From the NCBI GenBank assembly GCA_943704425.1, contig CALSCP010001507.1, forward strand, positions 1 through 64,000: DNA of 64,000 bases, in the 5' to 3' direction. Below the pieces are notes generated by a model. That model saw only the letters and a list, made by a program, of their open reading frames with translations, searched no databases and was not told the origin of the DNA. Source of the stretch: Ministeria vibrans ATCC 50519 (taxonomy: Eukaryota; Protista; Filasterea). This document shows, piece by piece, positions 7,700-8,653 of the stretch. Every line of letters begins with the position of its first letter. Position 1 is the stretch's first letter. Position numbers and translations under genes: made by a program.

Positions 7700-8076
7700 C
7701 ACGGGAATGAAATTGAAATTAGCAATAATAAATAATATTCAGAAATCTTTATTCTTCAGTCGATGACGCATTCACAGACACAATAAATCGAACAAAAGTG
7801 AAGTATCTGATGGCTCTTGCCGATTCCTTGGACCTTGGCTCCTTTATCGCATAAACTGACAAACCTGTAATTAATAAATCGCTCGTTTTCCAAAGTCGAA
7901 CCTATTGCGTTGTAACTCTAAAGCACTGTAAAGCCTATCCAAGGTGACCACAAATGTAGTAACACTAGCACTCTTAATGGGCCGTAACGTTGACTTTTTA
8001 ATTAAAAATAGGTATATATAACCAAATAAGCAATTTCGCCGTCAGATGAAGTGGCACTTGCTTCTGCTTCCAAACT

Positions 8077-8178
8077 TGCTTCATAGTGTAGTTGGTTAGA
8101 ATGAAAAACATCTGTTTTCCATGATTCCCACGATCGGCTCTGAACCGGTAGACCTGGGTTCGAATCCCGGTGAGGCAA
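8077..8178 (+). tRNA. trnQ-CUG: tRNA-Gln(CUG) with a 29-nt intron at position 22/23 (intron 8100-8128)
   Basis: After removing 8100-8128: acceptor TGCTTCA/TGAGGCA, D arm GTGT-AGTTGGTTA-GCAC, anticodon arm ATCGG-CTCTGAA-CCGGT (CTG at 8140-8142), T arm CTGGG-TTCGAAT-CCCGG; followed by a T9 run. Confidence 0.9.
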
Positions 8179-8187
8179 TTTTTTTTT
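8179..8187 (+). terminator. RNA polymerase III oligo-T terminator of the tRNA gene
   Basis: T9 run immediately after the discriminator base. Confidence 0.85.
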
Positions 8188-8653
8188 GCATTTTTGAGCA
8201 ATATCTTTTAATTTTTTATATTATAATTATATTTTTTATTCGTGGTTTTGTTTTTTTTTTTTTTACCAAAGTATACTTGTACTGAATGGCGTCTCCGCGT
8301 CTGTTTTGTGTCATCCTGTTCGACATGTTTGTTTCATTTATTGCTCAAGGAAAGGTAATATAATGAACAACAAGTGCGATTTAACGGATTTATAATCATT
8401 GAATATTATCATAGGCTCTCTCTCCAACCGCGAAACTCCCAGGTCGGGTCTCTCAGTCTCTGTGGACTGTGACGACTAATGACCGATGAGTCTGACTCAT
8501 TTTTAAGTCTGTCTGTCACTCTGAGGCATCTTCAGTCTGTGCTAACGTTCCAGCTTTGAGTCAATATTTTTAATCATTGCCACTTCACCACTCCGCCGCC
8601 TTGTATCCCTTACCACCGCACCACCCCACCCCACCCCTTGCAACTCAGTTGTT

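Follow-up and report, generated by a model that had tools for sequence, protein, structure and literature searches.

A nuclear gene for tRNA-Gln(CUG), split within its D-stem by an intron of 29 nucleotides (nt), lies near the start of the window, i.e., the whole stretch of 64,000 nt of contig CALSCP010001507.1 analyzed here. The gene is probably live, and its transcript would be matured via a relaxed bulge-helix-bulge motif, in which both splice sites occupy small bulges on either side of a short helix. Excision of the intron restores an intact tRNA, the motif falls in register with the boundaries that the tRNA itself dictates, and several introns at unusual positions in other tRNA genes of the same genome follow the same rule of cutting.

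A broader picture is somewhat favored as well. The host would be a non-photosynthetic eukaryote, possibly from the animal, fungal and amoeba side of the tree, in which the nuclear tRNA gene set is disrupted wholesale by introns in the D-arm and T-loop, by multiple introns in single genes and by permutation of about ten genes. These genes would be driven by an upstream motif and spliced independently of position with a four-subunit Sen complex, and their introns may be mobile. Contigs and loci elsewhere in the assembly, which comprises 29.7 Mb in 2860 contigs, are designated below by C and L numbers, respectively.

Anatomy of the interrupted gene

The gene was delimited by direct reading of the sequence and by the Rfam family RF00005, which matches it end to end (model positions 1-71; 46.9 bits versus a gathering score of 29) and accommodates about 31 nt of the D-loop as an insertion. 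Upon excision of positions 8100-8128, the 7-bp acceptor stem, the 4-bp D-stem and the 5-bp anticodon and T-stems all pair in the computed fold. The mature form carries the usual invariant nucleotides (U8, A14, G15/C48, G18 G19, A21, G26, U33, A37, G53 TTCGA and C61), and none of the 73 exon positions shows a disabling change. An earlier note on this DNA had claimed that removal of these bases leaves a complete cloverleaf followed by a run of nine T residues (T9), and the Rfam score, the stems and the invariants bear this out.

The boundaries of the insert are unique, as a shift of one base in either direction alters the mature sequence. Its location between nucleotides 22 and 23 differs from the canonical position of eukaryotic tRNA introns, 37/38. 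Because the intron sits downstream of the A box, this internal promoter element is untouched, and the intron only sets the B box farther away from it. ARAGORN reported no tRNAs across the entire 64-kb window, the Gln(CUG) gene included. The positions of the various elements are collected in Table 1, together with those tRNA genes from other contigs that are considered below.

Table 1. Elements of the Gln(CUG) locus and selected tRNA genes of other contigs. Positions refer to the window unless a contig is named; Pol III, RNA polymerase III.
Element	Position	Strand	Basis or description
Upstream promoter-like motif (AAAATA, 7 nt, TATA-like box, A-rich tail)	8005-8031	+	Loosened pattern
Probable 5' leader	8032-8076	+	Deduced from other tRNA genes, whose motifs lie 25-55 nt upstream
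tRNA-Gln(CUG) gene	8077-8178	+	Rfam RF00005 and direct sequence reading
Exon 1 (acceptor 5' strand, U8 A9, D-stem 5' strand, D-loop to nucleotide 22)	8077-8099	+	Rfam alignment, sequence
Acceptor stem	8077-8083 with 8171-8177	+	Seven pairs, one G·U; first pair U-A
A box (tRNA positions 8-19), intact	8084-8095	+	Sequence
D-stem	5' strand 8086-8089; completed by 8129-8131	+	D-loop extends to 8099; sequence
Central 4-bp helix, 5' strand (exon G18 G19 U20 U20a)	8094-8097	+	Pairs with 8123-8126
5' 3-nt bulge, predicted cut 8099/8100	8098-8100	+	Motif geometry
Intron, 29 nt, between tRNA nucleotides 22 and 23, inside D-stem	8100-8128	+	Unique boundaries; insertion in Rfam
Inner intron hairpin (3 bp, 1x1 mismatch, 5 bp, 4-nt loop)	8101-8122	+	In every predicted fold
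Central helix, 3' strand (intron bases)	8123-8126	+	Register test
3' 3-nt bulge, predicted cut 8128/8129	8127-8129	+	Motif geometry
Exon 2 (D-stem 3' strand, anticodon arm, 4-nt variable region, T-arm, acceptor 3' strand, discriminator A)	8129-8178	+	Sequence, Rfam alignment
Anticodon arm	8133-8149	+	Sequence
Anticodon CTG	8140-8142	+	Sequence
T-arm	8154-8170	+	Sequence
B box (GGTTCGAATCC), perfect	8157-8167	+	Pattern match
Discriminator A	8178	+	Sequence
T9 run, Pol III-type terminator	8179-8187	+	Sequence
Gln(UUG), 44-nt intron at 20/21	C1142		Central helix 3/4, inner helix 5 bp; 50/5000 shuffles as good
Leu(CAA) (class II, provisional reading), 22-nt intron at 22/23 plus 37/38 intron	C1255		Central helix 3/4, inner helix 3 bp; 10/5000 shuffles as good
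Pro(CGG), 28-nt intron at 25/26 plus 37/38 intron	C2066		Central helix 3/4, inner helix 8 bp; 9/5000 shuffles as good
Pro(AGG), intron of ~47 nt in D-loop	C2085 (L126)		Weak fit at the boundary that restores the tRNA
Glu(CUC), D-arm intron	C2263 (L081)		No fit to the cutting rule (shuffle test)
Gln array	C491:11943-12502 (L045: 244-315, 407-478, 568-639, 731-802)		Pattern search

Two other origins of the insert and the gene were considered and rejected. A self-splicing group I or group II intron is inconsistent with an insert of only 29 nt and with the lack of any Rfam intron family match in 7900-8400. The gene is also not a copy of mitochondrial trnQ, as the trnQ(UUG) of the mitochondrial contig (C1523) is unrelated to it in sequence. 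In the leader, the hexamer TGCTTC occurs at 8059-8064 and again at 8066-8071, thereby repeating twice most of the 5' strand of the acceptor stem (8077-8082). Slippage or a small duplication may account for these repeats (within 8058-8083).

The motif at the predicted splice sites

The motif was scored at the boundaries dictated by the cloverleaf alone. In the geometry employed, each cut is preceded, at a distance of 2 nt, by four bases, and these two sets pair to form the central helix; the inner helix begins 2 nt past the 5' cut and the outer helix 2 nt past the 3' cut. Counting wobble pairs, the central helix is complete at 4/4 (G·U, G·U, U-A and U·G, hence three G·U pairs). Two features of the strict hBHBh' motif are present, namely a pair of 3-nt bulges on opposite strands, exactly 4 bp apart, and an inner helix of at least 2 bp, which is formed here by 8101-8103 with 8120-8122 and by 8105-8109 with 8114-8118. 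The outer helix, for which at least 2 bp are likewise expected, consists of a single pair (U8093-A8130), and the next two positions mismatch. Owing to this short outer helix, the motif is not a full archaeal hBHBh' motif; it is a relaxed bulge-helix-bulge of the HBh' class, which in the classification used for the alga Cyanidioschyzon merolae combines a 4-bp central helix and a 3-nt bulge with a single flanking helix longer than two pairs. The designation "archaeal-type" in the earlier note thus holds for the register, the bulges, the central helix and the inner stem, but not for the outer helix.

The register was then compared with shuffled and shifted alternatives. When the intron was shuffled with its boundaries fixed, 40 of 5000 shuffles scored as well as the native sequence, as did 3 of 168 shifted registers near the intron. 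The combination of a 4/4 central helix with an inner helix of at least 3 bp was observed in one nearby register only, which is the one dictated by the cloverleaf, and the competing registers would not restore the D-stem. The motif register and the boundaries of the mature tRNA therefore coincide, as had been claimed before, and cleavage at these sites would yield exactly the mature sequence.

Disrupted tRNA genes elsewhere in the genome

Approximately 100 loci were sampled around matches to the B box and to the upstream promoter motif. In this non-exhaustive sample, about four-tenths of the roughly 40 dispersed tRNA genes were disrupted, either by an ectopic intron or by permutation. Ordinary genes are also present, as are genes with an intron at 37/38, among the latter Ser(GCU), Leu(CAG), Leu(AAG), Arg(CCU) and Asp(GUC). 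Computational removal of bulge-helix-bulge candidates followed by ARAGORN led to acceptance of far too many variants to define the boundaries, which were consequently set by hand from the rules of tRNA structure.

Apart from that of the window, four D-arm introns were subjected to the shuffle test, and three of them (on C1142, C1255 and C2066) fit the identical register. The rule extends to T-loop introns in two permuted genes, in which the central helix is again 4/4: all pairs are Watson-Crick in Ala(UGC) (L127), and one is a wobble pair in Thr(CGU) (L128) (by hand). Since the rule holds in independent genes with differing exon bases, the 3' end of the intron co-varies with the exon. The positions of the non-canonical introns are varied (22/23, 20/21, 25/26, D-loop and T-loop), as in C. 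merolae. The cutting rule is thus real in this genome but relaxed, much like that reported for C. merolae. The search for other tRNA genes with introns of this type, proposed in the earlier note, was therefore productive in both the D-arm and the T-loop.

About ten loci were read as circularly permuted genes, in which the T-arm and the 3' strand of the acceptor stem precede a short linker and the 5' half, the whole being positioned between an upstream motif and a T-run. The strands and isotypes of these loci are as follows: L046 (-), Arg-ACG; L044 (-), Arg-CCG; L082 (+), Gly-UCC; L085 (-), Trp-CCA (uncertain); L088 (+), Gly-CCC; L114 (+) and L115 (-), both Lys-CUU; L123 (+), Ser-UGA; L127 (+), Ala-UGC; and L128 (-), Thr-CGU. 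Six of them, after computational rotation, were recognized as full-length tRNAs by ARAGORN; as this tool is permissive, the isotypes are provisional. Three permuted loci carry an additional intron in the T-stem or T-loop. Maturation of permuted genes requires cutting and joining that do not depend on position.

Among the permuted genes, Arg(CCG) (L044, on C335, - strand) has a putative intron in its T-stem with runs of five and six T residues. Such runs would normally terminate Pol III, so that transcription would call for read-through or a different polymerase. A 9-nt insertion in the D-loop, which does not fit a bulge-helix-bulge, is found in three Ala(AGC) genes of identical sequence that have the G3:U70 pair (L089, L090 and L091, on C123 and C434). 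Either the D-loop of these genes is truly enlarged, or the insertion is a very short intron of a different kind.

Rfam detects almost none of the disrupted genes in the sample. The expectation that standard scanners would miss such genes is supported by this result and by the blank ARAGORN output for the window, although Rfam does find the window gene.

Promoter-like motif and terminator

The dispersed tRNA genes of this genome share an element of the form AAAATA-N7-(A/T)TA(G/T)CAC, usually followed by T residues and located 25-55 nt upstream of the gene. Genome-wide, the pattern has 44 matches, versus 17 for the reversed control, and most of the 20-nt matches lie before a tRNA gene or before some other short unit with a T-run at its end. 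T-run ends are also typical of the other non-clustered tRNA genes. The copy upstream of the window gene deviates at three core positions and was therefore found only with the loosened pattern; it is nearly identical to the copy before the Asp(GUC) gene (L042). Within the window, it is the sole motif of this kind followed by a unit with a T-run terminator, and among the examined genes with an upstream motif, the window gene is the sole Gln(CUG).

The same arrangement, from motif to T-run, was observed in three units of ~65-140 nt that are not tRNAs and lack an Rfam match (L125, L129 and L130, on C1993, C2371 and C2497, respectively). These units are probably other small RNAs of the Pol III type.

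Sequences resembling the intron

The first bases of the window intron (8100-8119) are identical at 17 of 20 positions to those of the T-loop intron of L127 (C2085:48590 onward, + strand), and the shared stretch includes a GAAAAC-NTCT-GTTTTC hairpin. In an unrestricted local alignment over 86 kb, the window intron scored 14, versus maxima of 13-15 for shuffled introns. As this control did not beat the shuffles, the likeness is no more than suggestive, hinting that the two introns are related or mobile.

Two further resemblances were noted. On the minus strand of C43 (L141; 13400-13800), a 26-nt stretch adjacent to D-arm-like sequence matches the window intron at 22 of 26 positions; neither a recognizable tRNA nor a terminator was found at this locus, which could be a decayed relative or a chance match. 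A hairpin in the 5' leader of a Thr(AGU) gene (L012, on C159) is similar in sequence (GAAAACAT..TCTGTT) to the core of the window intron.

Endonuclease subunits and the host genome

The six-frame translation of the genome was searched with Pfam profiles for subunits of the tRNA splicing endonuclease. Two catalytic-type genes were detected, one Sen2-like (on C1078) and the other Sen34-like (on C1244; its database relatives are named Sen34). In addition, Sen54 and Sen15 gave one match each, on C1258 and C1907, respectively. Inspection of the four homologues had been recommended in the earlier note, and all four are thus accounted for.

Neither psbA nor genes of the light-harvesting complex (LHC) were found in the assembly, and by this test of photosynthesis genes the host is not an alga. 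Thymidylate synthase and dihydrofolate reductase are encoded on different contigs. The unfused state of these two genes is that of animals, fungi and amoebozoans, and not that of plants and most algae. The description of the genome as apparently holozoan in the earlier note goes further than these observations. The mitochondrial genome is represented by C1523 (L101-L103 and L116-L118), which comprises 55,949 bp with 25% G+C and 25 tRNA genes, including its own trnQ(UUG). TGA is read as Trp in this genome, and cox1 contains 13 such codons in frame.

Intron-less Gln genes and tRNA arrays

Intron-less genes were sought by a pattern that places the anticodon CUG at the correct distance from the T-arm. 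This search revealed a tandem array on C491, in which four genes of 72 nt, two with the anticodon CUG and two with UUG, all for tRNA-Gln and all without an intron, recur with a period of 163 nt. The window gene is therefore not the sole Gln(CUG) of the genome, and, given these two copies, the cell need not depend on it. No gene of the array has a motif or terminator of its own; a single motif-like box lies upstream of the array, and a run of five T residues comes after its last gene. The array may be a polycistronic Pol III unit. A decayed fifth unit is located upstream. A viral origin of the array is not supported, in view of its ordinary nuclear neighbors (TauE, DHHC and EPTP genes; a permuted tRNA gene is found on the same contig) and because the only capsid match to nucleocytoplasmic large DNA viruses (NCLDV) is weak and on another contig.

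Other tightly packed tRNA arrays without the upstream motif were observed on C2083 (L104 and L105), C585 (L049), C2093 (L001) and C425 (L107). Some arrays carry anticodons with G34 of bacterial or organellar style (Val-GAC, Arg-GCG and Ile-GAU), and the weak NCLDV capsid match, which is below threshold, is on C2083 (21695-21868). Possible origins of these dense arrays include the native genome, a viral element or a contaminant.

Proposed maturation and alternative explanations

In the proposed course of maturation, transcription would proceed from the upstream TATA-like motif to the T9 run, with the internal A and B boxes also intact. The D-stem would be unable to close in the precursor, and exon bases 18-20a would instead pair near the 3' end of the intron. 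Both splice sites would thereby be placed in 3-nt bulges that flank the 4-bp helix, beside the stable hairpin of the intron. An endonuclease of the Sen2/Sen34 type would then cut after the second base of each bulge (8099/8100 and 8128/8129) without measuring from the folded tRNA body. As the D-stem cannot form before splicing, measurement from the mature domain cannot set the cuts at 22/23. A ligase would join the halves, whereupon the D-stem would form, the ends would be trimmed and CCA added, and the product would be used in translation.

Several observations weigh against this interpretation. The central helix contributes an energy gain of ~0 kcal/mol, and the outer helix is confined to a single pair. 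The conformer with the motif is estimated at -16.2 kcal/mol (-21.3 with the D-stem as closing helix) versus -25.3 kcal/mol for its rival, the rival pairing of 8093-8095 with 8128-8130 being ~4 kcal/mol better in the nearest-neighbor model. The precursor folds no better than shuffled sequences (z = -0.19 and -0.66), and the motif is not its stable, preferred fold. Among the sister genes, the D-loop intron of Pro(AGG) fits the rule weakly and the D-arm intron of Glu(CUC) does not fit. No orthologue of the gene was found: a scan of metagenomes with the 3'-exon pattern gave bacterial-type tRNA-Gln and one archaeal-type gene only. None of the sequencing runs listed is recorded as RNA, and four that were guessed to be RNA gave no contig over 7700-8600, which says nothing on expression. 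The acceptor end (U1-A72, A73) differs from that of the other Gln genes in the genome (G1-C72, U73) and is also unlike that of typical eukaryotic cytosolic tRNA-Gln. Finally, the cell may dispense with the window copy in view of the intron-less genes on C491.

The main alternative is a decaying or silent paralogue, i.e., a former Gln(CUG) gene whose D-stem received an insertion of 29 nt; it would be either untranscribed or unable to mature, with all of the tRNA-Gln(CUG) supplied from C491. The two intron-less copies, whose Rfam score (53.7 bits) exceeds that of the window gene, are in line with this explanation, as are the marginal central helix with its missing outer helix, the odd acceptor end and the lack of an RNA contig over the locus. 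We nevertheless consider it unlikely. The exons have retained their stems and invariants without one disabling change, the promoter motif and the T9 terminator are intact, and among the examined genes with such a motif no other Gln(CUG) was encountered. Moreover, the insert obeys the register rule of the other introns of the genome, which would be unexpected for a random insertion. The earlier note had proposed that failure to detect a spliced product, together with intact intron-less copies and a genome devoid of other introns of this type, would mark the gene as a pseudogene; intron-less copies were indeed found, but other tRNA genes with such introns do exist.

The bacterial-like U1-A72 pair raises another explanation, whereby the spliced product would serve in a non-cytosolic role, such as mitochondrial import or another route of charging. 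This pair is an identity element for bacterial glutaminyl-tRNA synthetase (GlnRS) and for the tRNA-dependent amidotransferase. The anticodon arm and the T-arm are close to those of the bacterial tRNA-Gln(CUG) from the metagenome scan, and the acceptor stem is unlike those of the other Gln genes in the genome. Such a role is nevertheless improbable: the mitochondrial genome already has a tRNA-Gln(UUG), the discriminator is A and not the bacterial G, and the D-arm, variable region and T-loop are common to the nuclear Gln(UUG) gene on C1142.

An error of assembly or sequencing, in which the 29 nt would have been wrongly joined to a gene that is in truth uninterrupted, is conceivable in a fragmented assembly of 2860 contigs with a single copy of the locus. 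This explanation is highly implausible, since 94-97% of the words sampled from the surrounding 6 kb are present in contigs of several DNA runs, which come from at least two studies and years. Furthermore, the insert forms a clean hairpin, its boundaries with the exons are exact and, unlike a mis-join, it resembles introns at other loci.

A live nuclear gene matured via the relaxed motif is thus the reading that we retain. The more general proposal of a structure-guided, position-independent system of tRNA splicing is supported in part by evidence from genes, namely the ectopic introns, the permuted genes and the Sen homologues.

Comparison with known systems

Textbook tRNA splicing in eukaryotes relies on an intron at 37/38 and on an enzyme that measures from the folded body of the tRNA. 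The window intron presumably shares the enzyme family of this TSEN "ruler" system but differs in its position at 22/23. Non-canonical tRNA introns of archaea (Thermoproteota and others), on the other hand, are cut by EndA at a bulge-helix-bulge. The likeness to the archaeal system resides in the independence from position and in the cut after the second base of 3-nt bulges that flank a 4-bp helix. The differences reside in the eukaryotic set of four enzyme subunits, the eukaryotic Pol III features and the unrelated sequences of the introns. D-loop introns in tRNA-Gln are known from archaea as well: the metagenome contig Ga0066639_10138682 (L098) carries an archaeal-type tRNA-Gln(CUG) with A1-U72, A73 and a D-loop intron of ~33 nt, which is unrelated to the window gene.

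The closest parallel is C. merolae, in which introns in the D-stem, D-loop and T-loop, permuted genes that also contain introns, and relaxed bulge-helix-bulge classes including HBh' have been described, together with an upstream TATA-like element and a T-stretch in place of reliance on the internal boxes (PMC3728597). The ectopic introns, the permuted genes, the HBh' motif and the combination of a TATA-like element (of predicted activity) with a T-stretch are all found in the present genome as well. In C. merolae, processing was demonstrated by northern blot and reverse-transcription PCR, and Sen15 was not found (PMC3728597). In contrast, the present host shows no photosynthesis genes, has a Sen15 homologue and maintains intron-less copies of the same isoacceptor, and processing is predicted here from the genes.

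Atypical introns resembling bulge-helix-bulge motifs are also known in Chondrus crispus and permuted tRNA genes in Ostreococcus and Micromonas, and Guillardia theta and Bigelowiella natans have nucleomorphs with non-canonical introns or permuted genes (PMC13578239). A 2026 review considers such cases "rare exceptions in certain unicellular algae", and all of them are algae or algal remnants (PMC13578239). The nuclear exceptions on record are accordingly limited to a few algae and algal nucleomorphs (PMC3728597, PMC13578239). The present genome has non-canonical introns and permuted genes in common with them and would extend their range. In the searchable literature, no report was found of disrupted tRNA genes in a non-photosynthetic eukaryote or heterotrophic protist. 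The kind of element is therefore already known from algae, and the host is the novelty.

For this genome, annotation of tRNA genes by standard tools is badly incomplete, as most of the disrupted genes escape ARAGORN and Rfam. If the interpretation is correct, an archaeal-like, structure-guided mode of the endonuclease would be in regular use outside the algae, and a second, independent system would be available in which to study how Sen2, Sen34, Sen54 and Sen15 handle precursors in which no D-arm can form. Disrupted tRNA genes would then be no peculiarity of algae, and would either have been present in the ancestor of eukaryotes or be capable of evolving repeatedly.

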